From: Macrostomum lignano
Lineage: Eukaryota
Assembly: GCA_002269645.1 (NCBI GenBank)
Contig: NIVC01000969.1
Coordinates: 1 to 64,000 of the forward strand
Length of the DNA stretch: 64,000 nucleotides
Direction of reading: 5' to 3'
Part shown: positions 741-64,000 of the stretch, in pieces
Numbering within the stretch: the stretch's first letter is position 1
Layout of the letters: each line of letters begins with the position of its first letter
Program-made: the position numbers and the translations under genes
The notes under the pieces: generated by a model
Database searches by the model: none
Seen by the model: the letters and a program-made list of their open reading frames with translations, nothing else
Told to the model about the DNA's origin: nothing

Positions 741-10040
<9,300 letters not shown>

Positions 10041-11241: not shown

Positions 11242-11480
11242 GCCAGATGTGCAACCGACAGCTCAGCCGCAGCTATTGCGCGGCGCATCTGAAGGCTGCG
11301 TACGGCTGTTCAGTCTAAGGACTGGGGGGGGGGGTCACCACACACACACCCTCAATTACCCCAGCTACTCGTAATTCTGGCTTGGTGAACTGAAGCAATG
11401 CAGAGTTAATGTCTTGCTCAAGAACACAAATTATTACGCGTGGGTTGAGAATCGAACCCCCGACCTTTCAGTCTTGCGGC
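11242..11480 (-). mobile_element. CORE/MIR-type SINE copy 2
   Basis: Aligns by eye with 5452-5710 in the same orientation. Confidence 0.7.
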
Positions 11481-33981: not shown

Positions 33982-36900
33982 ATGGCGCAGCTCTTGGCGC
34001 TGAGTGCTCTGTTTGCAGCTCTTTGTGCTCTTGGAGGCGGTGAGTTGTCTGTCTGCCTTCAATGTCAGATTACTGTAAGTCTTCATCATTCACGTGAAAA
34101 CCCCTGCTCTCTTAAAGCGGCGAGCTCCATCAAATTCAACATCACGACAACAAACGTCGCGGCTTCCTGGCAGTCGTCAGAATACTTCAACAGGTGCTTC
34201 AGACACACGGCTGTTCTTGAGCAGTGGGATTACTTTCACACAACGGGCACCCCAGACTCTCATGGAAACCAGTGGCTGCTCATTAAGCTGTCCCGTGCAA
34301 TCCGTGTGCAATCAGTCACTGTCTATGGCAGGGCAGCAGGTGAGTTGTCTTGTTCACACTTCTGTCTCTTCCGCTTCACTTCTTTCTTACTTCTCTTCTC
34401 ACTGCAGAGCCCAACAGAGCACAGAACATCGAGATTCTGCTGAGTGACAGACTGCCACCGGGTCTGAATGCGAGCAGCGATAGTTGCTATGGGACTCTGT
34501 CGGGTAGCTTGAGCTCGCTCACTCAGTGCGGAGTCACCCAGCGTGAGCAGACTCAGACTCACAAGGTGGCCTGCAGCTACTCTGGCTGCCCGAAAGTGGG
34601 TTTGTCTCCATCTACTCTGTTGTTGCTGAGCAAAGTGCAAATAGGTGCAAATAGGTGCAAATAGGTGCAAATTGGTGCAATTTGGTGCAAATAGGTGCAA
34701 ATTGGTGCAAATAGGTGCAAATTGGTGCAAATAGGTGCAAATAGGTGCAAATTGGTGCAATTTGGTGCAAATAGGTGCAAATAGGTGCAAATAGGTGCAA
34801 ATAGGTGCAAATAGGTGCAAATAGGTGCAAATAGGTGCAAATAGGTGCAAATAGGTGCAAATAGGTGCAAATTGGTGCAAATTGGTGCAAATTGGTGCAA
34901 ATTGGTGCAAATAGCTGCAAATAAATGGCTAAATCACACGAAATTTCAGGTGACTGAGTACATCTTGCTAAGGAAGAACGTTCGAAACGAATCTGATAAG
35001 TATATGAACTTTCAAGCTCTGGAAGTCGAAGAAGGTACGACTTTAGTTGATTAAAGCTTAATTATGCCTTCATGGGACATTGTTGACTCGAAACAAACTT
35101 TCTCTCTTTCAGCATCTCAGAATGCGCAGATTTATAGGTGTGAAGTGTCTGGCGGACGCCTCAGTAACTGCAGACTCAATGCTTTGCAAACTTTGAAAAA
35201 TGGCGACAGAGCTTATATGAAAGTCTGCCCACCGTGTCAGCTTCCGACAACTGATGCAGCATCTTGTCACATTGCTGCTCCAAGTGGCAATATCACACAG
35301 CTGAGAGTTGTGAGCTCACGGATGAATTTATTTCTTTTTAAATGATTTTCACGGACTATTCGACTAACTAATAGAAATAAGTGGAATGAGCAATTATGAA
35401 TGTTAACACTATTTTTTATACGATTGTAGCCAGTTCCTTAAATTTCTTTCACCATTTTCAGAATGGGCACCCAGACTCCAATTTAATTGTAATTTTCACA
35501 TCGACTGCGAAAAGTCAAGGAGGAAACTTCACGTGCAACTTTAACTGCTCGAGCGATTTGCCTCAGTCAGCAACTGAACCAATCGGTTTCTTTGGTATGC
35601 AGCTTTTGTGTGTACTTTTTACCTCAGACAGGTGAATTCGTAAAGCAACCTTCTACTGTTCAAACTGTTGTAATCTAATATATTGGTATTTTGCCAGCAG
35701 CCTACTATCAGGTGCAGTACAAATAACACCCTAAAAGCAGGTTGCAGTGCAAATGACACCCTAAAAGCAGGTTGCAGTGCAAATGACACCCTAAAAGCAG
35801 GTGCAGTACAAATGACACCCTAAAAGCAGGTTGCAGTACAAATGACACCCTAGCAGCAGGTGCAGTACAAATGACACCCTAGCAGCAGGTGCAGTACAAA
35901 TGACACCCTAAAAGCAAGTGCAGTACAAATGACACCCTAGCAGCAGGTGCAGTACAAATGACACCCTAGCAGCAGGTGCAGTACAAATGGCTGCCTAGCA
36001 GCAGGTGCAGTACAAATGACACCCTAGCAGCAGATGCAGTACAAATGACAGCCTAGCAGCAGGTGGGTCATTTCACGAGAGGGTCGCATCATTTTTTGAA
36101 CTTTAAGCACTTGTAACTTCTGAACCATAATAGATAAACAAAGCTGCAAAAAGCAATCTGTGTCAAACTTCTAGTTCTATCTTTTTCACGTAGCTGCTTA
36201 TGAATTCTAAAACAACTGAACACATAGCAGAGCGTCAACCGTCAGCATAGTTTATGCTCTGCTATGTGTTCAGCTGTTGTCCAGGTGCAGTGCAAACGGC
36301 TGAGCTCATTTTCTGTTGCAGAGGAGAAGCCCAGAAGTGTCAGCATTGAGCCCAGCAACGGGGTCCAGATTGAATCAAGAATTTTTCTGGCTTCAGGCAT
36401 GGAGTTCCACTTCAGCTTCATCACAGAAGCTGCGTACCCAAGTCCCATCCATGCTTGTAGGCTGGTGAGAACTGCTGAGCGGGAAACTACAGAAGATACT
36501 TCAGGTGTTCTACTGCATCCCTTTACAGAGGTGAGAAAATCCTGTGCAATCTTAATACTTTCATTTCCAATTCTGATCTTCCCTCATCAAATTCTTTTTT
36601 TCAGAGATTCCTCACTGACGCCTCAGCAAACAAAAGCCATGTAATTACCAAGATCTCAGAGTATAGACTCAGCATTAGCGCACACATGCAAGCAGCTGGG
36701 CAAAAGATACAGTGCGTGTCGACTGTCGGTGAAAGCAGTGGAAAAGTGGGGAAATCAATTTCGCTGCCTGAGCTTGTAGGTAAGCAAAAATATTGGAGGG
36801 AGAGTACTGGCAGGTGATATCTGGAATTTCTCATATTAGATGAAGATGAGTTGTATTGAAATGATAAAAACTGCAGTTCCAAGCAAGCCGGAGTTTCTGC

Positions 36901-39900
36901 TACCGCCAATCACGGACTGGAAAGATGGCCACTCCGTCTCAGTTGCTGTCGACTCAACAACAGACAGCCCTGTTCCAATCAGCCACCGCTGCTTGCTGGA
37001 GACTCGAGACGGCAACAGAAGCCTCTTCGCTACCCAGGTGAGTCTTGCTTTGGTTTGATGTCTTTGTGATGTCGGTTTCGAAAACAAAAACTTTGGCAAA
37101 ATATTGAATGCGTTTCATCAAATATCAAATATTTGACAAACGTCATGGGCTACTGAAGTGATTCATTCGGTGTTCTAAGCATGAGCATGTTTGAGCATGT
37201 TTACTTTCTTTGAATAAATACGAAATTTCTAAATTGCTACAAATTTCGAGTTCTCTTAAAACATTTCCTGTAGTAACTCTGAATCAGTCCATGAGTGTGT
37301 GTACAGGACTATCCTTCTCGCATGGTAGAGACTTCTCAAATCGAAATTCCAGGTAACAAATAAAAGCAGTAAATTCGAGTTGGATGTTGATAGACACTGG
37401 GGAAACGCAGCCTCTCTGGTCTGTTTGGTAAATCAATCTGGGCTGATCCAGACATGGACTCGACATCGGCTACCGAAGGTGCTCTGTGAGTCTCTGATGA
37501 CATGACTTTCTTCACAAGCCCATTACTGCATTTGAAGATTAAGTCACGATTGCATTTTCGAATTCAGACAAGGCCGAAGGGCTGGCCATCCGTATTTTGT
37601 CAGGAGACCTGGTGACTGATGAAGAAGCCAGCTTCTCAGTGACTGCATCTGACTCAGGATACCCAGCGGCTCTGCACCAGTGCAGAATCGAGAGCAAGAG
37701 CCTCGGAGAAGACAAGGTATGAGGCTGATGTTATTGCTCATTCAGAGTTCCCAACCAGCAGTTCAATGCTACAATTTCGGTTGACCATTACGCAGACTGC
37801 AGAGTCAGACGGCTCAAGTCACTGGAGATTCACGCCTCAGCGAGGGCACAACGGTGAACAAATCAGATGCGATGTGGTGCAGAAACTGAGTGGCTCTTTG
37901 ATATTCAGTCAGACTGTCAACAGCTCTAATCTGGATGTTAAATGTGAGTATCATGCTTTATTATGCTGCATGCTGCGATCCCGACCGATACAGTAGGGCT
38001 GCTTGCACTTCAGACAGGGCAATCGTCACGTGGCCCAGAAATATCGCTCCGAAAAAGGAAGGAGAGGCTCTGTCATTCGTTGTGCTCACAGACGGCAACC
38101 CAGAGCCCAGCAGTCAGTGCTGGCTGCAGCTGATTTCTGGCTCACAGGTGAGTCTTTGATTTGGGAGTGATGCTGGTTTCTGGCTCACAGGTGAGTCTTT
38201 GATTTGGGATGATGCTGGTTTCTGGCTCACAGGTGAGTCTTTGATTTGGGAGTGATGCTGGTTTCTGGCTCACAGGTGAGTCTTTGATTTGGGAGTGATG
38301 CTGGTTTCTGGCTCACAGGTGAGTCTTTGATTTGGGATGATGCTGGTTTCTGGCTCACAGGTGAGTCTTTGATTTGGGAGTGATGCTGGTTTCTGGCTCA
38401 CAGGTGAGTCTTTGATTTGGGAGTGATGCTGGTTTCTGGCTCACAGGTGAGTCTTTGATTTGGGATGATGCTGGTTTCTGGCTCACAGGTGAGTCTTTGA
38501 TTTGGGAGTGATGCTGGTTTCTGGCTCACAGGTGAGTCTTTGATTTGGGATGATGCTGGTTTCTGGCTCACAGGTGAGTCTTTGATTTGGGATGATGCTG
38601 GTTTCTGGCTCACAGGTGAGTCTTTGATTTGGGATGATGCTGGTTTCTGGCTCACAGGTGAGGCTTTGATTTGGGAGTGATGCTGGTTTCTGGCTCACAG
38701 GTGAGTCTTTGATTTGGGATGATGCTGGTTTCTGGCTCACAGGTGAGTCTTTGATTTGGGAGTGATGCTGGTTTCTGGCTCACAGGTGAGTCTTTGATTT
38801 GGGAGTGATGCTGGTTTCTGGCTCACAGGTGAGTCTTTGATTTGGGATGATGCTGGTTTCTGGCTCACAGGTGAGTCTTTGATTTGGGAGTGATGCTGGT
38901 TTCTGGCTCACAGGTGAGTCTTTGATTTGGGAGTGATGCTGGTTTCTGGCGCACAGGTGAGTCTTTGATTTGGGATGATGCTGGTTTCTGGCTCACAGGT
39001 GAGTCTTTGATTTGGGATGATGCTGGTTTCTGGCTCACAGGTGAGTCTTTGATTTGGGATGATGCTTGTTTCTGGATCACAGGTGAGTCTTTGATTTGGG
39101 AGTGATGCTGGTTTCTGGCTCACAGGTGAGTCTTTGATTTGGGAGTGATGCTGGTTTCTGGCTCACAGGTGAGTCTTTGATTTGGGAGTGATGCTGGTTT
39201 CTGGCTCACAGGTGAGTCTTTGATTTGGGAGTGATGCTGGTTTCTGGCTCACAGGTGAGTCTTTGATTCAGGAGTGATGCTGGTTTCTGGCTCACAGGTG
39301 AGTCTTTGATTTGGGATGATGCTGGTTTCTGGCTCACAGGTGAGTCTTCGATTTGGGAGTGATGCTGGTTTCTGGCTCACAGGTGAGTCTTTGATTTGGG
39401 ATGATGCTGGTTTCTGGCTCACAGGTGAGTCTTTGATTTCGGAGTGATAAGTTATGCTGGTTTCTGGCTCACAGGTGAGTCTTTGATTTGGGAGTGATAA
39501 GTTATGCTGGTTTCTGGCTCACAGGTGAGTCTTTGATTTGGGATGATGCTGGTTTCTGGCGCACAGGTGAGTCTTTGATTTGGGAGTGATGCTGATCTCT
39601 GGCTCACAGGTGAGTCTTTGATTTAGGAGTGATGCTGATCTCTGGCTCACAGGTGAGTCTTTGATTTGGGAGTGATGTTGCAGTCTCGGTATTTCATAAT
39701 AATCGCTATTTTCGTTCCAGGTAGACCTGCATAAGCTGAAGCATTCCATGTTTGAAAGCACCTTCAACGTTACTGTTGATAGGTCAATGAACCGAGCCAA
39801 TTTGAGCTGTGTTTTGACTCAACCTGGACTTCCATCCTCAACGGAGCAGAGCTTCACCCAATTGATCACAGTTTTTTGTAAGTTTACAGAATCCATTTTC

Positions 39901-42900
39901 ATCGGTTTCCTAAAGACGTATAAAATTGTAAATGCGTGCGTATTTTTTGAGCCAATGGAAACATTTCCTGTCGCTTAGGAGGCTCTGACTTGAAGCACTT
40001 CTTAAATCATAGACTGAAAAATAATATCGACCCAACCATCTCACAGATCAGCCTCAGCCTCCACTCACCATCGACTTGGCTCAGACTGTCTACGAAGGCA
40101 CCGACGTCACCTTCACGGTGCGGTCGGGCGCTGGAAACCCCAATGTCACCCACAGATGCTACGTGTACAACGGAGAAATTGTGAGCGCAATATTTGCTCA
40201 TCAAATCACCTGACTTGCAGCTTTGATTTAACACAGAGTTGATCATTCCAGGAAGTTCAAAACAGCATGAAAATCGAATCGGAGTACTTGACAATGGTGA
40301 ACTATACACCCAACAGTCATGACACATTTGTGAGCTGCACGGCCGAGCAGATGCACCGCTCTGAAGTTGTGTTCACCAGCAGCATCAGAAGGAACATCAC
40401 CGTCAATTGTGAGAAGTCAAATGCCATTTTATTAGCATGCAGCCTGCCATTTACTTGAAAACCGGAGTATCCACTTTAACTTCAGACTTTGCGCACAACT
40501 CCATGGACATCAGTCCGAGAGAAGGAGTTCTTGATGGAGATCGAGTCGAAGTGACGCTCAGATCTTATGGTGGCCGGCCTGCCGTCACGCGGCATGAGTG
40601 TTCGCTTGGCGGCCCTGAGCTGACTATGGAAAACGTATGCTTTTTCATCACCTGAGTGCTTTTGAATTGACTGTAACCCTTCTTCAGGCATCCTAAATGA
40701 TCAATTTGAGAATATTTCTACAGGTAAGAAGCCGTTCCACCGAAGTGAAGTTCACGTTTCGTGCATCGAAAGAGCACGACGGCAAGGTGCTCGCCTGCAA
40801 ATTCGTACAGGATGAGCGACTGATTGAGTGGAAGAGAGACAAACTCAGCGTCTTCTGTAAGTACAGTTTGAGTTGTTTATTTGTGTGAAAGTATGGGGGT
40901 ACATTCTTCTTTGAAAAGGAACTCGTTAAGCCACACTGATGTAAATGTGCACTGCTTTTTCGCACCTGTAGACAAAGCGGATTTCGACTCTGAGGTAAGA
41001 ATCATAAAGAGAAAAGTCAGGTGGAACACGACAGTCCAGTTCAGCATCTACTACTCTGATGTGGGAAACCCGTCCGCCAAGCACTTCTGCCGCATCGGCT
41101 CTCGGCCACTCACCGATCCTGAGGTGCGAAAATACTGACCCACATTTTTGTCTGCTTTATGTAAGGGACTGGGTAGTTGATATTGTAATGGGAAAGATCT
41201 GGTCAAAATACATTTCAGTCAGTTTCAACATTACAATCGCTTTGGAAGTTCAAGGCTCAAGTCGGAGACAACGGTCAGAAGATCGTCTGCCAGGTGGTGC
41301 AAAATGATCAGCATGGCGGCCGAGTCTTTAACCAAACAGTTGCCAGCCAGACTCTGGATGTGCTCTGTAAAGATTTTGTTTATCAGTTGTATTTATTGCT
41401 TCAATCGAGCTATTTATATTTATTCCAATATATTGAACCACTTTGACTGTCACAACATTGTTTTCTTAATCTCTCCATCTTTTCAGACCCAGTCAGCTAC
41501 TCAGGATTTCTATCCCAGCCACCGTCGGTGACGGAGGGCGATCCCTTGGTTATTTCTTTCTTTTCAACTGGAGGAAACCCCGAGCCTCGTCACCAATGCT
41601 GGTTGCAGACACCTGCAGGTCGAATGGACGCAGTCGCTCCAACAGAGGCGAGGACAGATGTGGATCTCGTGACGAACTTCAGTGTGACTTCCGTAAAGCA
41701 GATGAATGGAGGATCTGTGGTTTGCCGCGTCTCTCAGATGGGCCTCGAGGACCTGGACAAGGATTTCTCCCAGAACATCACTGTTTTCTGTGAGTTCTCT
41801 GTCGCGACTGCTCCAACTTTTATAACAATACAAAATCTAATAAAAAAACGTTCGTTTTTCCGTTCCAGTCCGATCGGAGGTGGATCTGACCGGCTCAAAG
41901 ATTTCAGGATCCACAGTGCTCGTCAGCATCAATGTGACGGATGGAAACCCGACACCGCTGGTGAACTGCTCGCTGTTCTCAAGCTCTGGAACTCGACATG
42001 TGGGTTCTCAGTGTGCACAGTTGCTCCGCTTCTATTTGCATTGAGTAGCTTTAATGCAGCCGAACCCGTCATTTTAGGAGGTTGCCAGGAATTACTCGAC
42101 AATGCTGAGAGTCGGACTCCATGAGATGGAAGTCGATCTGTTTTCAAGAGAGCAGCCTCAGTCAGCCAACGTCACGTGTTCTGTGAAGCAAGAGTATGCG
42201 GGTTTCAAAAGCAGCAGCCTTGTCTTCTTGGCACTCAAATCTGACGAGAGTTTTCAAGCTAGCGACCAAGAAAGTGAGCAGTTCTGTGTAGTCCAGCTTA
42301 GCTGCATTACTAAACTATTGTCTTTTAAGTTAATCGTATTGTAATGTCTTATCATATTGCTACTATTGTATTATCGCTACAAAAACTGATCAATGCAGAC
42401 CATGGGAGCCTCAGCTGGAATCAAATGTTCCAAATTCTCTGTCTGTGCGCAGTGGTTGCCGTCGCTATCTTTCTTTCTCTGCCTGCCACAGTCTACGTCT
42501 GGAGGCGAACTGCATCGCCTCGGTTGGCAATTCAGCGGCAGCACGGAGCAGCCACAGACAGGAGACCAGCTGACGTACCTCTGGTCCCTGTGACTGCTGC
42601 TGAGCGAGATCTCAATGTAATATTGCTTTTCAGTATTGCTTGCTCATTTTGCTGTTTAATCTGTGTGTGAGGCTGACAATCTGTGGGACACTTCAGACCG
42701 TCTACTACTATGAGGAGAACCCGGCGCTTCCGGATCGGCCTCCGAGCGTTGAGGAGACGGACTCAAATGTATGTCTATTGTCTGCATCTTTGCCAGATGC
42801 TCTCAGTGCATGCTCAGTGCAGGATTCAGTTCCGCTCATTGCAGATGGTGCACTGTTCTGAGGAGGAGCAGACGGCTCAGGGAGCTGTCGAATTCTACGT

Positions 42901-42907
42901 GCAGTGA
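33982..42907 (+). CDS. Copy C: lectin-like + 10 Ig-like domain receptor with the same TM/tail type as A and B
   Basis: Exon-for-exon paralog of B, e.g. 33982-34039, 34118-34339, TM exon 42399-42616, 42697-42768, last exon 42845-42907 or 42823-42861. No frameshift seen in the exons I translated. Confidence 0.85.
34636..34920. repeat. (ATAGGTGCAA)n repeat, copy C
   Basis: Direct reading. Confidence 0.95.
35708..36065. repeat. ~29-bp minisatellite, copy C
   Basis: Direct reading. Confidence 0.95.
38128..39680 (+). repeat. 42/43-bp splice-donor minisatellite, copy C (about 36 units)
   Basis: Same unit; first donor at 38148. Confidence 0.95.
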
Positions 42908-46791: not shown

Positions 46792-49700
46792 ATGGCGCAG
46801 CTCTTGGCGCTGTGCGCTCTGTGTGCAGCTCTTTGTGCTCTTGGAGGCGGTGAGTTGTCTGTCTGCCCTCAATACCAGATATATTGTAAGCCTTCATCAC
46901 TCATGTGAAAGCCCCTGCTCTCCTACAGAGGCAAACTCCATCAAGTTCAACATCACGACAACAAACATCGCGGCTTCCTGGCGGTCGTCGGAATACAACA
47001 ACAGGTGCTTCAGAGACACGGCTGTTCTTGAGCAGTGGGATTACTTTCACACGACGGGCACCCCAGACTCTCATGGAAACCAGTGGCTGCTCATTAAGCT
47101 GTCCCGTGCAATCCGTGTGCAATCAGTCACTGTCTATGGCAGGGCAGCAGGTGAGTTGTCTTGTCCACTTCTGTCTCTTCCGCTTCACTTCTTTCTTACT
47201 TCTCTTCTCACTGCAGTGCCCAGCAGAGCACAGAACATCGAGATTCTGCTGAGTGACAGACTGCCACCGGGTCTGAATGCGAGCAATGGCAGTTGCTATG
47301 GGACTCTGTCCGGTAGCTTGAGCTCGCTCACTCAGTGCGGAGTCACCCAGCGTGAGCAGACTCAGACTCACAAAGTGGCCTGCAGCTACTCTGGCTGCGC
47401 GAATGTAGGTTTGTCTCCATCTACTCTGTTGTTTCTGAGCAAATTGCAAATAGGTGCAAATAGGTGCAAATCGGTGCAAATAGGTGCAAATAGGTGCAAA
47501 TCGGTGCAAATAGGTGCAAATCGGTGCAAATAGGTGCAAATCGGTGCAAATAGGTGCAAATAGGTGCAAATAGGTGCAAATGGGTGCAAATAGGTGCAAA
47601 TCGGTGCAAATAGGTGCAAATAGGTGCAAATAGGTGCAAATAGGTGCAAATGGGTGCAAATAGGTGCAAATCGGTGCAAATAGGTGCAAATAGGTGCAAA
47701 TAGGTGCAAATAGGTGCAAATTGGTGCAAATAGGTGCAAAAAGGTGCAAATTGGTGGCTAAAACTCACGAAATTTCAGGTGACTCAGTACATCTTGCTAA
47801 GGAAGAACGTTCGAAACGAATCTGATAAGTATATGAACTTTCAAGCTCTGGAAGTCGAAGAAGGTACGACTTTAGTTGAATAAAGCTTAATTATGCCTTC
47901 ATGGGACATTGTTGACTCGAAACAAACTTTCTCTCTTTCAGCATCTCAGAACGCGCAGATTTATAGGTGTGAAGTGTCTGGCAGAAACCTCAGTAACTGC
48001 AGACTCAATGCTTTGCAAACTTTGAAAAATGGCGACAGAGCTTATATGAAAGTCTGCCCACCGTGTCAGCTTCCCACAACTGATGCAGCATCTTGTCACA
48101 TTGCTGCTCCAAGTGGCAATATCACACAGCTGAGAGTTGTGAGCTCACGGATGAATTTATTTCTTTTTAAATGATTTTCACGGACTATTCGACTAACTAA
48201 TAGGAATAAGTGGAATGAGAAATTATGAATGGTAAAAAATCGTGTTTTTATACGATTTTAGCCAGTTTCTTAAAGTTCTTTCACCATTTTCAGCATGGGC
48301 ACCCAGACTCCAATTTAATTGTAATTTTCACATCGACTGCGGAAAGTCAAGGAGGAAACTTCACGTGCAGCTTTGATTGCTTGAGCGAGTTGCCTCAGTC
48401 AGCAACTGAACCAATCGGTTTCTTTGGTATGCAGCTTTTGTGTGTACTTTTTACCTCAGACAGGTGAATTCGTAAAGCAACCTTCTACTGTTCAAACTGT
48501 TGTAATCTAATATATTGGTATTTTGCTAGCAGCCTACTATCAGGTGCAGTACAAATGACACCCTAAAAGCAGGTTGCAGTGCAAATGACACCCTAAAAGC
48601 AGGTTGCAGTGCAAATGACACCCTAGCAACAGGTGCAGTGCAACTGGCACTCTAGCAGCAGGTGCAGTACAAATGACACCCTAGCAGCAGGTGCAGTACA
48701 AAGGACACCCTAGCAGCAGGTGCAGTACAAATGACAGCCTAGCAGCAGGTGCAGTACAAATGACAGCCTAGCAGCAGGTGCAGTACAAATGACAGCCTAG
48801 CAGCAGGTGCAGTACAAAGGACAGCCTAGCAGCAGGTGCAGTACAAATGACACCCTAGCAGCAGGTGCAGTACAAATGACAGCCTAGCAGCAGGTGGGTC
48901 ATTCCACGAGACAGTCCCATAATGTTTTTGAACTTTGAGCACTTGTAACTTCTGAACCATAATAGATAAACAAAGCTGCAAAAAGCAATCTGTGTCAAAC
49001 TTCTAGTTCTATATTTTTCACAAAGCTGCTTATGAATTCTAAAACAACTGAACACATAGCAGAGCGTCAACCGTCAGCATAGTTTATGCTCTGCTATGTG
49101 TTCAGCTGTTGTCCAGGTGCAGTGCAAACGGCTGAGCTCATTTTCTGTTGCAGAGGAGAAGCCCAGAAGTGTCAGCATTGAGCCCAGCAACGGGGTTCAG
49201 ATTGGATCAAGGATATTTCTGGCTCCAGGCACGGAGTTTCACTTCAGCTTCATCACAGAAGCTGCGTACCCAAGTCCCATCCATGTTTGTAGGCTGGTGA
49301 GAACTGCTAAACGGGAAACTACAGAAGATACTTCAGGTGTTCCACTGTATCCCTTTACAGAGGTGCGAAAATCCTGTGCAATCTTAATACTTTCATTTCC
49401 CATTCTTATCTCGTCCCATTAAATTATTTTTCAGAGATCCCTCACTGACGCCTCAGCCAACAAAAGCCATGTAATTACCAAGATCTCTGAGTACAGACTC
49501 AACATTAGCGCACACAATGCAGCTGAGAAAAAGATACAGTGCGTGTCGGCTGTCGGTGAAAGCAGTGGAAAATCGGTGAAATCAATTTCGCTGCCTGAGC
49601 TTGTAGGTAAGCAAAAATATTGGAGGGAGAGTACTGGCAGGTGATACCTGGAATTTCTCATATTAGATGAAGATGAGTTGTATTGAAATGATAAAAACTG

Positions 49701-52700
49701 CAGTTCCAAGCAAGCCAGAGTTTCTGCTACCGCCAATCACGGACTGGAAAGACGGCCACTCCGTCTCAGTTGCTGTCGACTCAACAACAGACAGCCCTGT
49801 TCCAACCAGCCACCGCTGCTTGCTGGAGACTCGAGACGGCAACAGAAGTCTCAACGCTACTCAAGTGAGTCTTGCTTTGGTTTTATGCCGTCGTGATGTC
49901 GGTTTCGAAAACAAAAACTTTGGCAAAATATTGAATGCGTTTCATCAAATGTCAAATATTTGACAAACGTCATGGGCTGCTGAAGTGATTCATTCGGTGT
50001 TCTAAGCATGAGCATGTTTACTTTCTTTGAATAAATACGAAATTTCTAAATTGCTACAAATTTCGAGTTCTCTTAAAACATTTCCTGTAGTAACTCTGAA
50101 TCAGTCCATGAGTGTGTGTACAGGACTATCCTTCTCGCATGGTAGAGACTTCTCAAATCGAAATTCCAGGTAACAAATAAAAGCAGTAAATTCGAGTTGG
50201 ATGTTGATAGACACTGGGGCAGCCCAGCATCTCTGGTCTGTTTGGTAAATCAATCTGGGCTGATCCAGACGTGGACTCGACATCGGCTACCGAAGGTGCT
50301 CTGTGAGTCTCTGATGCCATGACTTTCTTCACAAGCCTATTACTGCATTTGAAGATTAAATCACAATTGCATTTTCGAATTCAGACAAGGCCGAAGGGCT
50401 GGCCATCCGTATTTCGTCTGGAGACCTGGTGAGTGATGAAGAAGCCAGCTTCTCAGTGACTGCATCTGACTCAGGATACCCAGCGGCTCTGCACCAGTGC
50501 AGAATCGAGAGCAAGAGCCTCGGAGAAGACAAGGTATGAGGCTGATGTTATTGCTCATTCAGAGTTCCCAGCCAGCAGTTCAATGCTACAATTTCGGTTG
50601 ACCATTCCGCAGACTGCAGAGTCAGACGGCTCAACTCAGTGGAGATTCACGCCTCAGCGAGGGCACAACGGTGAAAGAATCAGATGCGATGTGGTGCAGA
50701 AACTGAGTGGCTCTTTGATATTCAGTCAGACTGTCAACAGCTCTAATCTGGATGTTAACTGTGAGGCTCATGCTTTAATCTGCTGCATGCTGTGATCCCG
50801 ATCGATACAGTAGGGCTGCTTGCACTTCAGACAAGGCAACTGTCACGTGGCCCAGAAATATCGCTCCGAAAAAGGAAGGAGAGACTCTGTCATTCGTTGT
50901 GCTCACAGACGGCAACCCAGAGCCCAGCAGTCAGTGCTGGCTGCAGCTGGTATCTGGCGCACAGGTGAGTCTTTGATTTGGGATGATGCTGGTATCTGGC
51001 TCACAGGTGAGTCTTTGATTTGGGATGATGCTGGTTTCTGGCTCACAGGTGAGTCTTTGATTTGGGATGATGCTGGTATCTGGCTCACAGGTGAGTCTTT
51101 GATTTGGGATGATGCTGGTTTCTGGCTCACAGGTGAGTCTTTGATTTGGGATGATGCTGGTATCTGGCTCACAGGTGAGTCTTTGATTTGGGAGTGATGC
51201 TGGTTTCTGGCTCACAGGTGAGTCTTTGATTTGGGATGATGCTGGTTTCTGGCTCACAGGTGAGTCTTTGATTTGGGATGATGCTGGTTTCTGGCTCACA
51301 GGTGAGTCTTTGATTTGGGATGATGCTGGTTTCTGGCTCACATGTGAGTCTTTGATTTGGGATGATGCTGGTTTCTGGCTCACAGGTGAGTCTTTGATTT
51401 GGGATGATGCTGGTTTCTGGCTCACAGGTGAGTATTTGATTTGGGAGTGATGCTGGTTTCTGGCGCACAGGTGAGTCTTTGATTTGGGAGTGATGCTGCT
51501 TTCTGGCTCACAGGTGAGTATTTGATTTGGGAGTGATGCTGGTTTCTGGCTCACAGGTGAGTATTTGATTTGGGAGTGATGCTGGTTTCTGGCTCACAGG
51601 TGAGTCTTTGATTTAAGAGTGATGCTGCTTTCTAGCTCACAGGTGAGTCCTTGATTTGGGATGATGCTGGTTTCTGGCTCACAGGTGAGTCTTTGATTTG
51701 GGAGTGATGCTGGTTTCTGGCTCACAGGTGAGTCTCTGATTTGGGAGTTATGCTGCAGTCTCGGTGTTTCATAATAATCACTATTCTCGTTCCAGGTAGA
51801 CCTGCATAAGCTGAAGCATTCCATGTTTGAAAGCACCTTCAACGTCACTGTTGATAGGTCAATGAACCGAGCCAATTTGAGCTGTGTTTTGACTCAACCT
51901 GGACTTCCATCCTCAACGGAGCAGAGCTTCACCCAATTGATCACAGTATTTTGTAAGTTTACAGTATTCATTTTCATAGGGTTCATAAAGAGGTATACAA
52001 TTTGTAAATGAGTGCGTATCATTTGAGCCAATGGAAACATTTCCTGTCGCTTCGGAGGCTCTGACTTGAAGCACTTCTTAACTCGTAGAGTGAAAAATAA
52101 TATCGACCCAATCATCCTACAGATCAGCCTCAGCCTCCACTCACCATCGACTTGGCTCAGACTGTCTACGAAGGCACCGACGTCACCTTCACGGTGCGGT
52201 CGGGCGCTGGAAACCCCAGCGTCACCCACAGATGCCACGTGTACAACGGAAAAGTTGTGAGCGCAATATTTGCTCATCAAATCACCTGAATTGCAGCTGT
52301 GATTTAACACAGAGTTGATCATTTCAGGAAGTTCAAAACAGCATGAAATTCGAGTCGGAGTACTTGACAATGGTGAACTATGCACCCAACAGTCATGACA
52401 CATTTGTGAGCTGCACGGCCGAGCAGATGCACCGCTCTGATGTTGTGTTCACCAGCAGCATCAGAAGGAACATCACCGTTAATTGTGAGAAGTCAAATGC
52501 TATTTTATTAGCATGCAGCCTGGCATTTACTTGAAAACCGGAGTATCCACTTTAACTTCAGACCTTGCGCACAACTCCATGGGCATCAGTCCGACAGACG
52601 GAGTTCTTGCTGGAGATCGAGTCGAAGTGACACTCAGATCTGATGGTGGCCGGCCTGCCGTCACGCGGCATGAGTGTTCGCTTGGAGACTCTGAGCTGAC

Positions 52701-55522
52701 TAAGGAAAACGTATGCTTTTTCATCACCTGAGTGCTTTTGAATTGACTGTAAACCTTCTTCAGGCATCCTAAATGATCAATTTGAGAATTTTTCTACAGG
52801 TAACAAGGCGTCCCACCGAAGTGAAGTTCACGTTTCGTGCATCGAAAGAACACCACGGCAAGGTGCTCGCCTGCAAATTCGCACAGGATGAGCGACTGAT
52901 TGAGTGGAAGAAAACCAATCTCAGCATTTTCTGTAGGAGAAAATGAACCAATATTTTTCACGTTTTTTCGCTTTTTGTTTGCAAATGCATGTACACTTCA
53001 CATTCACTTTTCGTACCTTTAGACAAAGCGGCTGTCGACTCTGAGGTGCAAACCTTAAAGAGAAAAGTCAGGTGGAACACGACAGTCCAGTTCAGCATCT
53101 CCTACTCTGATGTGGGAAACCCGTCCGCCAAGCATTTCTGCCGCATCGGCTCTCGGCCACTCACCGATGCTGAGGTGCGAAAATACTGACCCACATTTTT
53201 GTCTGCTGTATGTAAGGGACTGGGTAGTTGATATTGTAATGGGAAACATCTGGTCAAAATACATTTCAGTCAGTTTCAACATTACAATCGCTTTGGAAGT
53301 TCAAGGCTCAAGTCGGGGACAACGGTCAGAAGATCGTCTGCCAGGTGGTGCAAAATGATCAGCATGGTGGCCGGGTCTTTAACCAAACAGTTGCCAGCCA
53401 GACTCTGGATGTGCTCTGTAAGGATTTTGTTTATGTGCTGTATTCATTTCTTCGATAGAGCTATTTATATTTATTCCAATATATTGAACCACTTTGACTG
53501 TCACAACATTCTTTTCTTAATCTCTATCTTTTCAGACCCAGTCAGCTACTCAGGATTTCTATCCCAGCCACCGTCGGTGACGGAGGGCGATCATTTGGTT
53601 ATTTCTTTCTTTTCAACTGGAGGAAACCCCGAGCCTCGTCACCAATGCTGGTTGCAGACACCTGCAGGTCGAATGGACGCAGTCGCTCTAACAGAGCCGA
53701 GGACACTTGTGGACCTCTTGACGAACTTCAGTGTGACTTCCGTAAAGCAGATGAATGGAGGATCTGTGTCTTGCCGCGTCCGTCAGAAGGGCCTCGAGGA
53801 CCTGGACAAGGAGTTCTCCCACAAAATTAATGTTTTCTGTGAGTTCTCTGTCGCGACTGCTGCAACTTTTATATCAATACAAAATCTAATAAAAAAACGT
53901 TCGTTTTTCCGTTCCAGTCCGATCGGAGGTGGACCTGACCGGCTCAAGGATTTCAAACTCCACAGTGCTCGTCAGCGTCAATGTGACGGACGGAAACCCG
54001 ACACCGCTGGTGAACTGCTCGCTGCTCTCGAGCTCTGGAACTCGATATGTGGGTTCTCAGTGTGCACAGTTGCTCCGCTTCTATTTGCATTGAGTAGCTT
54101 TAATGCAGCCGAACCCGTCATTTTAGGAGCTGTCCAGGAATGACTCGACATTGCTGAAAGTCGGACTGCATGAGATGAAAGTCGATCTGCTTTCAAGAGA
54201 GCAGCCTCAGTCAGCCAACGTCACCTGTTCTGTGAAGCAAGACTATGCGGGTTTCAAAAACAGCAGCCTTGTCTTCTTGGCACTCAAAGCTGACGAGAGG
54301 TTTCAAGCTAGCGACCAAGAAAGTGAGCCGATCTCAGCTGCTCGTATTGGTTTTTTCAGCTAGCATGACTTTTTCTGATATTGAAATGTATAAGTGCATT
54401 ATTTCACGGATTTCTCGTATTAAATAGTGCGTTGTCTCACACCGCCAAAAGCAGGAGGGTCGGTAGGCGGCGCTGTCGGCGCCACATTCGGAACGCTGTT
54501 GGCCGTGGGACTGGTCGGGGCCGCAATCCTGCTGCTGCTGAGAGCTCGGCGACTCAGGGCAACTGACGGGCCCGACAATCGCAGCGGCTACTCCAACGGT
54601 AGAAGAGGAGCCAGTGGAGCTGCTCGAACGGAACGAGAAAAGCAACAGCCTAGAAAAAAGCAGACCGAAGATCCCACAGAGACTGAGCTGCAGTTCATGG
54701 ACAAGCACTATCTGTATCCGGTGAGATGAGCATCATTGGACTTTTAATTAACAGATTCCTGATCCAACTTGGAACAATTTGTGTCTTTGAGCAAGACACT
54801 TAACTCTGCATTGCTTCAGTTCACCCAGCTGTAAAATGGGTGCCAGTATTAGCTGGGGTAATTGAGGGTGTATGGCGACCCAGAGTTCTTGGGCTGAACA
54901 GCCGTACGCAGCCTTCAGATGCGCCGCACAATAGCTCGGCGCAATAGGTTGCACGTCTGGCCCCCTGGGTTAGGTGTAATAAATTATTATTATTATTATA
55001 CATCTGAAGCATCTCCCTAGCAATATCTGCAGCCTCTCTTTAGCAACATCTGCAGCATCTCCCCAGCAACATCTGCAGCCTCTCTCTAGCAACATCTGCA
55101 GCCTCTCTCTAGCAACATCTGCAGCATCTCCCTAGCAGCATCTCCAGCATCTCCCTAGCAACATTTGCAGCGTCTCCCTAGCAGCATCTCCAGCATCTTC
55201 CTAGCAAAATGTGCAGCATTTCCGTAGCAACATCTGTAGCATCTCCTTAGCAACATCTGCAGCATCTCCCTAGCAGCATCTGTAGCATCTCCCTAGCGAA
55301 ATCTGCAACGTACCTATTAGCTGTAACCAACACCTACCAGTATTCAAAAACTTGATACCATTGCAGAAGCCCCGCATGGAGTACGCTACGGTTGTCAAGG
55401 GCAAACTAATGGAAGAGACCAGCCTAGCCGACAGCACAGAGACAATCTACCTGACCATCGTGGGCTGCACACAGCCTGAGGATGACAAGGCGCCCACAAT
55501 GCAGAAATCTAAGGTCAACTGA
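46792..55522 (+). CDS. Copy D: same ectodomain with an unrelated TM and an ITIM-like/ITSM-bearing tail (putative inhibitory receptor)
   Basis: Exons 1-23 parallel B and C (46792-46849, 46929-47150, ... ending 54322). Then a TM exon ~54428-54720 (AVGATFGTLLAVGLVGAAILLLL-RARR; acceptor position uncertain) and last exon 55367-55522 (KPRMEYATVVKGKLMEETSLADSTETIYLTIVGCTQPEDDKAPTMQKSKVN*). AATAAA at 55763. Confidence 0.85.
47445..47755. repeat. (ATAGGTGCAA)n repeat, copy D
   Basis: Direct reading; includes ATCGGTGCAA variants. Confidence 0.95.
48538..48897. repeat. ~29-bp minisatellite, copy D
   Basis: Direct reading. Confidence 0.95.
50946..51757 (+). repeat. 42/43-bp splice-donor minisatellite, copy D (about 19 units)
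   Basis: Same unit; first donor at 50965. Confidence 0.95.
54755..55002 (+). mobile_element. CORE/MIR-type SINE copy 3 in the last intron of copy D
   Basis: Reverse complement of copies 1 and 2; ends in an (ATT)n tail. Confidence 0.7.
55005..55310. repeat. ~22-bp degenerate minisatellite (GCAGCATCTCCCTAGCAACATCT)n
   Basis: Direct reading, in the last intron of D. Confidence 0.85.
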
Positions 55523-55762: not shown

Positions 55763-55768
55763 AATAAA
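55763..55768 (+). terminator. Putative polyadenylation signal of copy D
   Basis: First AATAAA I found after the stop at 55522. Confidence 0.5.
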
Positions 55769-57387: not shown

Positions 57388-60115
57388 CTATAGTGAAGCA
57401 TTTCCTGAGCAGCGACTCAAAAGCCGCTTGCTGCTTGGCCTCTTCGGCCGGGTCGTTCGCAGGCTTGATTGCCTCGGCCGCCGCTGACTGCGGACCACCG
57501 ACACCCGGCGGCGGCGTAGACGGCCGCGGCCCGTTGACGCCGACGCTTCCGGGGACGCGCGACAGCGCCTCGGCGACAGGAGAGCGGCGGTGAAGAAAGC
57601 CGGAGGCAGCAGGCTCTCCATCAGAGTCTGGACACCCCGAGCATCGCCAGCGACTGTCAATATTTGAGAGCGAGCGTTGATTGAGCTTGAATCATTTTTA
57701 ATATTTTTGGAATGATTTTTTGTGTCTTAGAAAAGTATTAAGTATGGTTACTATCGATTTTTAAGAATTTTATTACAGGGACTACTCAAAAATGGTTTGA
57801 GCACTATTTTTACCAGGTAGTCTCTGGGGTTTGAAATGCATTTAAGCTTAAAGGATCTTAAACGCTTTGATATAAAAGATTTCTTTACATCCATATACTA
57901 AAAATGGTCTATTGGTAGGTAGGTAGGTATCTATCTAGGTATGTGATCGATTTTAGCAAAATTTTAACTATTTTCAAAACGTTTTAAATGATTTAGTAGG
58001 TGTATCGAACATTTAAAGATTGTTGTATCGAATATTTAGAAAGTTTTTTATTAATTTTATAAACTCGCAAAATTAAATCACGAAAACTTAAATTTAGGTT
58101 AATTTTTCATTAAATTTACATACAAATTTACAGTTGTTGTCCATATTTGAGCCTCAATCTATAATTATAAACAGCAAGCAGACCTTAGTTTAAATTTAAT
58201 ATATATATATTATTTTAAAATTACACATCATAGCAAATAGTACTGGCGTTTTTTACACGGTAACTACAATAAATACTGATTGTATATACTGTAGTATTTA
58301 TAGCAATGGTCCAGCTACATTTGAAGGACCACAAATCCATTCTTTTGAAGGCGTATGAGTTGCATTCGCCATTCTCGTTCGTTTCTTTTGAAGCAACCTT
58401 CGTACTTTACATTATTAAAAGTACGAGCTAATAACAAACGCTAAGCTATAATTGCACATAAATTACGCCTAAACTCCATCTACCGACTTTAGTTAGTTTA
58501 AATTTAAATTCATTATGAAAATAAGAGATACAGGAACAAATATTGAGTAGTCCCTGATGAGGTAACTATTTACAAGGTATTTATTTCAGTTACCGTGACA
58601 CTCAAACTCGGAATACCAAAAATATATAGTTACGTAAGAGCCCTCCCTGGGCTGATGCGCAGGGCTTTAATTTGCCCAAACTTATCAACGTGAACATGAA
58701 CGTATTTATTTCAGTTACCGTGTAAATAACGACTGCCAGTAGCTTTAGCTACCTTCCGGTTTTACCATAAATTAGTCCTATTAATTCACATTGTTGCTGA
58801 CTGAGACATTTACCTATCTGCCAAGCTGTGATTAAATTAGTCACATGTTTATGACCGGCATAAATTGCTGTTAAATTTAGGATGCATCTGTAACTATCTA
58901 AAGCTGTGCAGTCATTTACAGTCTAAATGTACACTAAAAATAATATACATTTTCTGCTTACATGGAAACATTCGCGTCAGCAGCTCCCGATGCAGCTGGT
59001 CAATGTACGCAGCCGCCTGTTGCACTACTTTCATCTGTAAGGTGGTAGAGAGAGAGAGAGAGAAGTTTAGCGTGAAAGAAAATTATGTAGCCATCTTTAC
59101 TATACTACTATCAATAGACAGTTTAGAGATTATTAATTGCATTACTTGTATATAATTATAAAGGATAGTAACTTCTTAGCAGTCCACTGAGTCCCATTCG
59201 GGTGTCTAAAGTGGGTACTGAAGTAGTTGCTCGTGGCCCCATGAGGTAACTGGGTATCTAGAGTGGGTAGTTGCTCGTGGCCCCATGAGGTAACTGGGTA
59301 TCTAGAGTGGGTAGTTGCTCGTGGCCCCATGAGGTAACTGGGTATCTAGAGTGGGTAGTTGCTCGTGGCCCCATGAGGTAACTGGGTTATCTAGAGTGGG
59401 TAGTTGCTCGCGGCCCCATGAGGTAACTGGGTATCTAGAGTGGGTAGTTGCTCGCGGCCCCATGAGGTATGGAGGTATCTGGGTATCTAGAGTGGGTAGT
59501 TGCTCGCGGCATTATGAGGTATGGAGGTATCTGGGTATCTAGAGTGGGTAGTTGCTCGCGGCATTATGAGGTATGGAGGTATCTGGGTATCTAGAGTGGG
59601 TAGTTGCTCGTGGCCCCATGAGGTACCTTGGTATCTAGAGTTAGGTAGTTGCTCGCGGCCCTATGAGGTACCTTGGTATCTAGAGTGGGTAGTTGCTCGC
59701 GGCCCTATGAGGTACCTGGGTATCTAGAGTTGGGTAGTTGCTCGCGGCCCCATGAGGTATCTGGGTATCTAGAGTTGGTCGTGGGAATATACTGACGGCC
59801 CATTGAAGTATCTGGGCATCTAAATCTTATGGCGCTAGGTGAAGCATTAACACACAAAAGTAATTATTTTGGCCCAGGTAAGCTGGTAGGAAAACGGTTG
59901 TTGGCAACATAGATAATCTTGTAGAATCCAGCTAAATAGCTTGAATATAACGGTACACGTCTTCCACAGCCCAGTGGAACTCTCACCTGTCCTGTCTCCG
60001 ATGCCAGCGGCCCGTCAGCCGAGACTTCGGCGGCACCAGGCAGCACCCGGAGCAGCCGACGGCACTCGCGCACCTCCTCCAGTTGGCGAGACCGAAGCTG
60101 CAGCTGCTGCGTCAT
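57388..60115 (-). CDS. Three-exon helix-loop-helix protein lacking an obvious basic region (Id/emc-like), about 155 aa
   Basis: Exon 1 60115-59987 (MTQQLQLRSRQLEEVRECRRLLRVLPGA..., donor CAG|GTGAGA). Exon 2 59034-58962 (MKVVQQAAAYIDQLHRELLTRMFP, long (CT)n acceptor, donor GTAAGC). Exon 3 57653-57388, in compatible phase. ECRRLLRVLP...KVVQQAAAYIDQL fits the HLH helix1/helix2 pattern. Confidence 0.7.
58247..58731. mobile_element. Probable MITE in intron 2 of the HLH gene
   Basis: ~31-bp imperfect inverted repeats CGTTTTTTACACGGTAACT... (58247) and ...AGTTACCGTGTAAATAACG (58731); TSD not clean. Confidence 0.5.
59215..59780. repeat. ~38-50-bp minisatellite (GGGTATCTAGAGTGGGTAGTTGCTCGYGGCCCCATGAGGTA..) in HLH intron 1
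   Basis: Direct reading. Confidence 0.9.
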
Positions 60116-60569: not shown

Positions 60570-60875
60570 TTGGATTTCGGAGTTATGTTATTTCGGGTTT
60601 TTTATGGGAAGTGATGTCGGAGTTATGTTATTTCGGGTTTTTGATGGGAGCGATTTCGGAGTTGTGATATTTCGGGTTTTTGATGGGAGCGATTTCGGAG
60701 TTGTGATATTTCGGGTTTTTTATTGGAGCCATTTCGGAGTTGGGATATTTCGGGTTTTTGATGGGAGCGATTTCGGAGTTGTGATATTTCGGGTTTTTGA
60801 TGGGAGCGATTTCGGAGTTGAGATATTTCGGGTTTTTGATGGGAGCGATTTCGGAGTTGTGATATTTCGGGTTGC
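60570..60875. repeat. 39-bp minisatellite (ATTTCGGAGTTGTGATATTTCGGGTTTTTGATGGGAGCG)n
   Basis: Direct reading, about 7 units. Confidence 0.9.
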
Positions 60876-60965: not shown

Positions 60966-61079
60966 AATTTATGTATCTTAATTTATGTATCTTAATTTAT
61001 GTATCTTAATTTATGTATCTTAATTTATGTATCTTAATTTATGTATCTTAATTTATGTATCTTAATTTATGTATCTTAA
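60966..61079. repeat. (AATTTATGTATCTT)n 14-bp tandem repeat
   Basis: About 8 perfect units. Confidence 0.95.
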
Positions 61080-61785: not shown

Positions 61786-62580
61786 ATTCTCCCAATGAGC
61801 TCTAAGAATTCTCTCCCTTCCTGCCCATGAGATTAGAAGATTCTCTCCCTTCCCGCCCATGAGATTAGAAGAATCTCTCCCTTCCCGCCCATGAGATTAG
61901 AATATTCTCTCTATTCCCACCCATGAGATTAGAAGATTCTCTCCATTCCCGCCCTTAGCTTAGAAGATTCTCTGCCTTCCCTCTCATGAGATTATAGAAT
62001 TCTCTTCCTTCCGCCCATGAGATTAGAAAAGACCCTCTCCCTTCCTTCTCATGAGATTAGAAGACTCTCTCCCTTCTCGCCCATGAGATTAGAAGATTCT
62101 CTGCCTTCCCTCTCATGAGATTATAGAATTCTCTTCCTTCCGCCCATGAGATTAGAAAAGACCCTCTCCCTTCCTTCTCATGAGATTAGAAGACTCTCTC
62201 CCTTCTCGCCCATGAGATTAGAAGATTCTCTGCCTTCCCTCTCATGAGATTATAGAATTCTCTTCCTTCCGCCCATGAGATTAGAAAAGACCATCTCCCT
62301 TCCTTCTCATGAGATTAGAAGACTCTCTCCCTTCTCGCCCATGAGATTAGAAGATTCTCTGCCTTCCCTCTCATGAGATTATAGAATTCTCTTCCTTCCG
62401 CCCATGAGATTAGAAAAGACCATCTCCCTTCCTTCTCATGAGATTAGAAGATTCTCTCCCTTCCCGCCCATGAGATTAGAAGATTCTCTCCCTTCCCGCC
62501 CATGAGATTAGAAGATTCTCTCTCCTATCCCACCCATGAGATTAGAAGATTCTCTCCCTTCCCACCCATGAGATTAGAGT
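61780..62580. repeat. ~32-bp satellite (CCCATGAGATTAGAAGATTCTCTCCCTTCCCG) with a 129-bp higher-order period
   Basis: AGAAGATTCTCTGCCTTCC recurs at 61962, 62091, 62220 and 62349. Confidence 0.9.
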
Positions 62581-62919: not shown

Positions 62920-64000
62920 TCACTGTGAATATTGTGACTGTGTGATGTATAGTGACTGAGGCTGGCACTGACTCACTGTGAATAGTGTGACTGTGTGATG
63001 TATAGTGACTGAGGCTGGCACTGACTCACTGTGAATACCGTGACTGTGTGATGTATAGTGACTGAGGCTGGCACTGACTCACTGTGAATACCGTGACTGT
63101 GTGATGTATAGTGACTGAGGCTGGCACTGACTCACTGTGAATACCGTGACTGTGTGATGTATAGTGACTGAGGCTGGCACTGACTCACTGTGAATACCGT
63201 GACTGTGTGATGTATAGTGACTGAGGCTGGCACTGACTCACTGTGAATAGTGTGACTGTGTGATGTATAGTGACTGAGGTTGGCACTGACTCACTGTGAA
63301 TACCGTGACTGTGTGATGTATAGTGACTGAGGCTGGCACTGACTCACTGTGAATACCGTGACTGTGTGATGTATAGTGACTGAGGCTGACACTGACTCAC
63401 TGTGAATACCGTGACTGTGTGATGTATAGTGACTGAGGTTGGCACTGACTCACTGTGAATACCGTGACTGTGTGATGTATAGTGACTGAGGCTGGCACTG
63501 ACTCACTGTGAATACCGTGACTGTGTGATGTATAGTGACTGAGGTTGGCACTGACTCACTGTGAATACCGTGACTGTGTGATGTATAGTGACTGAGGCTG
63601 ACACTGACTCACTGTGAATACCGTGACTGTGTGATGTATAGTGACTGAGGCTGGCACTGAGTCACTGTGAATACCGTGACTGTGTGATGTATAGTGACTG
63701 AGGTTGGCACTGACTCACTGTGAATACCGTGACTGTGTGATGTATAGTGACTGAGGCTGACACTGACTCACTGTGAATACCGTGACTGTGTGATGTATAG
63801 TGACTGAGGCTGGCACTGAGTCACTGTGAATACCGTGACTGTGTGATGTATAGTGACTGAGGTTGGCACTGACTCACTGTGAATAGTGTGACTGTGTGAT
63901 GTATAGTGACTGAGGCTGGCACTGACTCACTGTGAATACCGTGACTGTGTGATGTATAGTGACTGAGGCTGGCACTGAGTAACTGTGAATAGTGTGACTG
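62920..64000. repeat. 53-bp satellite running off the window end
   Basis: Unit CACTGTGAATACCGTGACTGTGTGATGTATAGTGACTGAGGCTGGCACTGACT, about 20 copies. Confidence 0.95.

Follow-up and report, generated by a model that had tools for sequence, protein, structure and literature searches.

How does the last gene of a tandem cluster of immunoglobulin-like (Ig-like) receptor genes in the flatworm Macrostomum lignano signal, and does its final exon provide tyrosine motifs of the inhibitory kind? The question is raised by a stretch of 64,000 nucleotides (NCBI GenBank assembly GCA_002269645.1, contig NIVC01000969.1, positions 1 to 64,000 of the forward strand), referred to here as a whole as the window. 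The window contains a segmental duplication whose tandem units recur about every 13 kb, with four gene copies, A to D. A preliminary description had drawn attention to two tyrosine motifs in the last exon of copy D, one resembling an ITIM (immunoreceptor tyrosine-based inhibitory motif), the other matching an ITSM (immunoreceptor tyrosine-based switch motif). We find that copy D is a tail-swapped paralogue, since near-identical ectodomains in this cluster stand on two unrelated modules made of a transmembrane (TM) segment plus tail, and that it is a plausible candidate for an inhibitory or switch receptor. The features of copy D needed for the argument are the following.

46792-55522, + strand: gene of copy D, with its ATG at 46792, its TGA at 55520-55522 and 1381 codons spread over 25 exons (Pfam and PDB searches).

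54428-54720, + strand: exon 24, encoding the TM helix and the membrane-proximal tail (single copy in the window; codon usage 0.63 bits per codon).

54721-55366, + strand: intron 24, 646 bp (repeat and minisatellite analysis, splice-site scoring).

55367-55522, + strand: exon 25 (stop-free translation; acceptor second of 64 AG sites; codon usage 0.65 bits per codon).

55376-55393, + strand: MEYATV, an ITIM-like motif of the YxxV type whose position -2 is M (translation and comparison with the consensus).

55442-55459, + strand: TIYLTI, an exact ITSM (translation and comparison with the consensus).

55763-55768, + strand: AATAAA, the likely polyadenylation signal, about 240 nt past the stop (read from the sequence).

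The copy D model was built from the signal-peptide exon at 46792 onward. Every intron is of the GT-AG type, the phases are consistent, and the joined exons form one open frame with no internal stop. The encoded protein consists, in this order, of a signal peptide, an N-terminal domain weakly resembling the F5/8 type C family, a long run of divergent Ig-like domains, one TM helix and a tail, with a multi-domain ectodomain of about 1200 residues. Most of the Ig-like domains, which belong to the C2-set, are split over two exons, with phase 0 inside the domain and phase 1 at the domain borders. Pfam returned C2-set_2 (E = 8e-11) and a weak match to F5_F8_type_C (discoidin), while a search of the PDB gave weak matches only, to SYG-2 (E = 0.008), nectin-4 (E = 0.012), titin and ICAM-1. 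Exon 24 starts 105 bp past the last Ig exon, in the right phase, and encodes the helix AVGATFGTLLAVGLVGAAILLLL (about 54472-54540) followed by the stop-transfer sequence RARRLR. With its signal peptide, C2-set_2 domain, single hydrophobic helix, RARRLR and tail, copy D has the architecture of a type I membrane protein, and its cytoplasmic tail amounts to 111 residues.

Exon 25 supplies the final 51 codons and the stop. The direct translation of its + strand, KPRMEYATVVKGKLMEETSLADSTETIYLTIVGCTQPEDDKAPTMQKSKVN followed by the stop, contains MEYATV and TIYLTI with their tyrosines separated by 22 residues, as the preliminary description had stated. The same description had called TIYLTI an exact ITSM and had noted that the preceding exon ends in YLYP, and both observations were borne out: TIYLTI agrees at every position with TxYxx[V/I], the definition of the ITSM (PMC8211107), and YLYP is encoded by the last four codons of exon 24 (54709-54720, ...DKHYLYP), directly before gtgaga. 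MEYATV falls outside the strict ITIM definition, [I/L/V/S]xYxx[I/V/L] (PMC9546547), because position -2 is occupied by M, and no strict ITIM is present elsewhere in the copy D tail. As regards class, the tail belongs with ITSM-bearing sequences and not with those carrying a strict ITIM. It contains five tyrosines, four of which stand in recognisable SH2-type contexts, namely YSNG (54589-54600, YxN type) and YLYP (YxxP type) in exon 24, and YATV and YLTI in exon 25. An M at -2 is reportedly tolerated by the N-terminal SH2 domain of SHP-2 in some peptide-library studies.

To see these motifs against chance, the 111-residue cytoplasmic tail was shuffled 200,000 times. At least one ITSM was found in 2.8% of the shuffled tails and a strict ITIM in 7.9%, and an ITSM accompanied, at a distance of 15-35 residues, by a second motif of a loosely defined class occurred in 0.09%. 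This loose class was defined after the sequence had been seen, and the motif pair had been picked from a scan of the whole window, so that its true significance is weaker than 0.09%; the spaced pair is moderate, not strong, evidence for something beyond chance. An explanation to be weighed here is that the motifs arose fortuitously, in a tail that is young, evolves fast and is confined to one lineage, and that they have no specific signalling role. The frequency of a single ITSM among the shuffles and the selection from the whole window are in its favour, whereas the rarity of the spaced pair, the four tyrosines out of five in SH2-type contexts and a codon usage indicative of maintained coding sequence are not, and we consider it unlikely.

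The motifs can also be read as signals that act without phosphorylation. Tyrosine-based sorting motifs are defined as YxxPhi, a pattern which both YATV and YLTI fit, and a genuine exon 25 might therefore encode unphosphorylated signals for sorting or endocytosis by AP-2-type adaptors, or generic docking sites of an adhesion molecule, in place of an inhibitory module that recruits SHP-2. The departure of MEYATV from the ITIM consensus points in this direction, as does the ectodomain, whose similarity beyond M. lignano extends only to adhesion-type C2-set proteins (SYG-2, nectin-4, ICAM-1). Sorting signals, however, require neither the T at -2 of TIYLTI nor a spacing of 22 residues, and the acidic and isoleucine-containing context E-T-I-Y, which we take to be like that of Src-type kinase substrates, also counts against sorting. 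Such a role does not appear particularly likely to us, and it is the strongest competitor for the same exon.

Either way, the motifs reach the protein only when exon 24 is joined to exon 25. The exon-24 donor, CCG followed by gtgaga, scores 8.4, compared with a median of 8.1 for the other 23 donors of copy D, on which the matrix was trained. The acceptor AG of exon 25 (55365-55366, context ccattgcag) scores 7.6 and ranks second among the 64 AG sites in and beyond intron 24. The 54720/55367 junction joins two phase-0 boundaries, and exon 25 continues the frame fixed by this donor for 51 codons without a stop. In codon usage, exons 25 and 24 (0.65 and 0.63 bits per codon) lie within the range of exons 1-23 (0.13-0.81), and only 1-1.5% of the stop-free intergenic stretches (n = 195, at least 50 codons each) score as high as these two exons. 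Both alternative frames of exon 25 score negative, which supports the frame given here against the possibility, allowed for at the outset, that the exon is read in another one.

Intron 24 consists almost entirely of a SINE-like repeat (SINE, short interspersed nuclear element; 54754-54998) and a 23-bp minisatellite (55000-55307), and was probably about 90 bp long originally, like the neighbouring introns. Besides the copy in the intron, which is on the + strand, the repeat is found at 5415-5667 and 11241-11435, both on the - strand, with a mutual identity of 79-85%. The top-ranked acceptor lies inside this insert: an AG at 54818-54819, for an exon starting at 54820, scores 8.2 versus 7.6 for the site at 55367. 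Splicing to 54820 would end the protein in ...YLYPFTQL, with both motifs lost, and retention of the intron would end it in ...YLYPVR, at a stop two codons into the intron. An AATAAA is also present at 54978-54983, and the repeat's acceptor and this signal could yield shortened copy D isoforms.

Exon 25 might be unused or confined to a minor isoform, the main copy D product ending just past YLYP without either motif. The early stop with its AATAAA and the higher score of the acceptor at 54820 fit this possibility. Against it stand the 51 open codons in the phase set by the donor, the exon-like codon usage with negative values in the other frames, and the clean AATAAA at 55763. On balance, loss of the exon from the main product seems improbable; that exon 25 is a genuine coding exon at the end of the gene is very probable, and its sequence features make its use likely.

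Searches of protein collections placed copy D in a family of M. lignano proteins. The ectodomain recovered only four UniRef entries, all of them Macrostomum lignano 'Ig-like domain-containing protein' at 63-89% identity, and the last Ig domain together with the tail, with the TM segment removed from the query, recovered three more M. lignano fragments in a second, word-indexed search. This search had a working positive control, and the family members that it returned carried only tails of the type found in copies A, B and C; a D-type tail was absent from the annotated M. lignano family members. This absence would be expected if exon 25 were skipped, but it says little, because the family annotations are fragmentary and run into introns. 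The reachable M. lignano protein models are fragments, and the collections held no other Macrostomum data.

The tail exon itself (51 aa) was searched by a full HMMER pass against 1.84 billion representative proteins, in which no homologue was found. Its four matches were rejected: they are Calx-beta repeat proteins or tandem repeats in translation, whose scores add up weak matches to repeated units. The D tail is an orphan in the searched data, which neither supports nor refutes a function; being a singleton, both there and relative to the annotated family, is also what a chance origin of the motifs would lead one to expect.

Some of the public models could be compared directly with the gene structure. 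P0001 and P0002 (UniProt A0A1I8H8M2 and A0A1I8GMR9) start in translated 5' untranslated region and end in ...VSAIFAHQIT, which is translated intron 15 (exon 15/intron 15 border at 52256/52257), and in P0004 the tail of one gene is run together with the gene that follows it. The M. lignano family needs re-annotation, its public models being fragments that run into introns.

The remaining copies in the cluster set the copy D tail in context.

15284-16607, + strand: copy A, a truncated chimera (homology to D; UniProt fragment P0011).

19675-29320, + strand: copy B, exons 1-23 intact (19675-28710) plus the alternative tail (homology to D, splice sites).

33982-42907, + strand: copy C, exons 1-23 intact (33982-42273) plus the alternative tail (homology to D, splice sites).

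16095-16604 (A), 28808-29320 (B) and 42401-42904 (C), + strand: alternative tail, highly conserved.

In copies B, C and D alike, exons 1-23 are intact and have canonical splice sites, and they share 87-99% of their nucleotides and about 91% of their amino acids. Between copies, the synonymous divergence (dS) is 0.07-0.08, the short introns differ by 6-9%, and the ratio of nonsynonymous to synonymous divergence (dN/dS) is 0.54-0.68, a fast evolution that would also suit a fortuitous appearance of motifs in the tail. The homology of D to the other copies ends six bases past the exon-23 donor. Exons 24 and 25 of D occur only once in the window; a D-type tail was looked for after copies A to C, and an A/B/C-type tail or a further family member downstream of D, and none was found in the window. 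The ITIM-like/ITSM module is confined to copy D, the last gene of the cluster.

The TM exon of the alternative tail (...FQILCLCAVV(A/G)VAI...VYVWRRTASP...) is intact in all three copies, and two small exons come after it, the first encoding TVYYYEENPALPDRPPSVEETD(S/A)N, the second M(V/A)(H/N)CSEEEQTAQGAVEFYVQ with the stop (TVYYYEEN...EFYVQ). In copy B the TM exon spans about 28808-29002, followed by TVYYYEENPALPDRPPSVEETDAN at 29113-29184 and MANCSEEEQTAQGAVEFYVQ at 29261-29320; in copy C the three exons lie at about 42399-42589, at 42697-42768 and at 42845-42904 plus the stop. The acceptor used within this TM exon by the annotated models differs from the one modelled here. The TM segment, FQILCLCAVVAVAIFLSLPATVYVW, contains no K, R, D or E, and the tail, of about 70-80 residues, is acidic and has a YYYEEN cluster with YxN and YEE-type motifs. 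No ITIM, ITSM or ITAM (immunoreceptor tyrosine-based activation motif) was found in it, nor the pattern Yxx[I/L]x6-9Yxx[L/I]. The same tail, identical or nearly so, occurs in the UniProt fragments P0004 and P0009-P0011.

In copy A, the signal-peptide exon is intact, with 98% identity to that of D, and is joined about 12 nt past its donor to the middle of an exon-21 homologue; the junction is apparently out of frame, and it is followed by exons 22-23 and by a tail of the A/B/C type that is intact. P0011 (A0A1I8HMB6) is identical to the copy A product and corresponds to its 3' part, which assigns the window to M. lignano, a free-living flatworm. Unequal crossing-over within the ectodomain exons, starting from an ancestral pair of genes, would give exactly the layout seen in the cluster and is a possible origin of it.

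If the copy D tail signals as its motifs suggest, engagement of a ligand would cause a Src-type kinase to phosphorylate both tail tyrosines, and the bisphosphorylated stretch would dock an SHP-2/Corkscrew-type phosphatase through its tandem SH2 domains, or else another SH2 protein. The geometry of the two motifs would suit a tandem-SH2 phosphatase of this kind. The output of copy D would then differ from that of the YYYEEN-type tail of A, B and C, and would probably consist in dampening or switching. We advance tentatively, as the best-supported of the possible readings of the tail, that exon 25, which most likely is translated as given above, places an ITIM-like motif and an ITSM near the C-terminus as two phosphotyrosine docking sites for an SHP-2/Corkscrew-type phosphatase, with a probably inhibitory effect.

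Several observations weigh against this reading. The M at -2 keeps MEYATV outside the strict ITIM consensus, both motifs also fit generic YxxPhi sorting signals, and short linear motifs arise by chance, the more so where the pattern was chosen after looking. In the collections searched, no homologous tail was found that could show conservation of either tyrosine. The competing acceptor in intron 24 and the two premature ends of the protein that the intron offers belong here too, as does the A/B/C partner, which is without a charged TM residue and the ITAM adaptor logic. The interpretation of copy D as carrying a docking pair is plausible, and its basis is a pair of hexapeptides in a tail that is an orphan.

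A wider proposal, to which we attach little credence, is that M. lignano has a paired-receptor system independent in origin of the vertebrate ones, in which near-identical discoidin-plus-Ig ectodomains would carry either the YYYEEN tail (Grb2/Src-type, positive) or an ITIM-like/ITSM tail recruiting SHP-2/Corkscrew, and the balance of the two would tune immune, mating or tissue recognition. If true, this would be the first inhibitory/activating pair described in Platyhelminthes, as far as literature searches show. If the copy D tail does recruit an SH2 phosphatase, flatworms too would have inhibitory signalling of the ITIM/ITSM type on Ig receptors that are clustered and evolve fast. No ITIM/ITSM receptor in Macrostomum or in flatworms was reported in the searchable literature, and literature searches for a flatworm PTPN11 gave nothing relevant. 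The copy D tail is a motif-level prediction and a candidate for follow-up, and it points to a gene whose 3' end is missing from the annotation, in a family that is poorly annotated as a whole. M. lignano is open to RNA interference, in situ hybridisation and transgenesis, so that the idea is directly testable.

The rest of the window holds a distant paralogue and many tandem repeats. The paralogue (2971-9576, + strand) lies upstream and combines an N-terminus of the discoidin-like kind with Ig-like exons; segments of it match D at 26-59% identity. Its TM exon ends in ...TTPHR followed by gtaagt at 9576, and past this exon (9.1-15.3 kb) only junk-like open stretches were found, none of them recognised as an ITIM/ITSM-like or cytoplasmic exon.

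Homologous introns of copies B, C and D contain minisatellites that vary in copy number. Intron 3 has a 10-bp unit, GTGCAAATAG (20321-20965 in B, 34635-34923 in C, 47445-47756 in D), and intron 6 a 29-bp unit (21771-22243, 35709-36065 and 48541-48896, respectively). In intron 13 the array has a 42/43-bp period on the + strand (24297-26092 in B, 38129-39677 in C, 50946-51755 in D), and its unit, ...GCTGGTTTCTGGCTCACAG running across the splice border into GTGAGTCTTTGATTTGGGATGAT, reproduces the final ~19 nt of exon 13 with its donor. The intron thus holds about 19-42 extra consensus donor sites of the form CAG/GTGAGT, and in copy D one frame is open through part of the array (50814-51194). The 23-bp array at 55000-55307 lies directly upstream of the copy D tail exon. 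Unrelated arrays occupy the last 5 kb, at 59223-59779, 60573-60873, 60966-61079, 61808-62578 and 62920-64000, with periods of 44, 39, 14, 32/129 and 53 bp. Downstream of copy D no gene was recognised in the window, and Rfam and tRNA scans of the window gave no matches.

Among known systems, the closest parallel in layout is PD-1 (CD279), with its ITIM VDYGEL (Y223) and ITSM TEYATI (Y248). Its tail, ...SVDYGELDFQWREKTPEPPVPCVPEQTEYATIVFPS, has the two tyrosines 25 residues apart and contains TEYATIV (PMC7078208), and its ITIM engages the N-SH2 and its ITSM the C-SH2 domain of SHP2 (PMC6994217). Copy D resembles PD-1 as a type I member of the immunoglobulin superfamily (IgSF) with two motifs near the C-terminus, an ITIM-like one followed by an ITSM, and the spacing of 22 residues is close enough to 25 to uphold the preliminary comparison with motif pairs that engage SHP-2. 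The likeness of MEYATV to TEYATI, put forward in the same description, stands in part: E-Y-A-T and the V at +4 are common to both, giving the shared string EYAT[V/I]V, but in copy D this string occupies the first motif and not the ITSM position, and the M at -2 makes it a non-canonical ITIM. The ectodomain of PD-1 is a single V-set domain, unlike the multi-domain one of copy D, and neither the tail search nor the ectodomain search returned PD-1. The likeness is not homology; it is convergent or due to chance.

The organisation of the cluster recalls the vertebrate paired receptors (KIR, LILR, SIRP), with tandem genes, ectodomains about 91% identical and swapped TM/cytoplasmic regions, and as in paired receptors only one type, here D, carries ITIM/ITSM-like motifs. 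In classical activating partners, a charged residue in the TM segment goes with a short tail and with pairing to an ITAM adaptor. The A/B/C partner has neither such a residue nor an ITAM, and its tail is not short; no sequence relationship to the vertebrate clusters was found in our searches. The correspondence is partial, since similar ectodomains with divergent tails are present and an activating partner of the classical kind is not.

Similarity of the Ig domains is best, though weak, to C2-set adhesion molecules of the nephrin/SYG-2/nectin type, whose tails are regulated by tyrosine phosphorylation. This likeness is at the level of generic domains only; the discoidin-like domain and the tail of copy D are not shared with them.

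IgSF receptors with predicted or tested ITIMs have been described in other invertebrates, namely an oyster NCAM1 homologue (PMC11841013), the Alr proteins of Hydractinia (PMC9546547) and fester/uncle fester of Botryllus (PMC12582321). These belong to other phyla and are unrelated in sequence, and the oyster protein has binding data whereas the flatworm one is known from its sequence. These sets, like the M. lignano receptors, are lineage-specific, clustered and fast-evolving, and the ITIM/ITAM-type motifs of their tails were recognised mostly by motif search. If the copy D tail does recruit an SH2 phosphatase, the cluster would constitute a second, independent case of tail-swapped paired receptors outside vertebrates.

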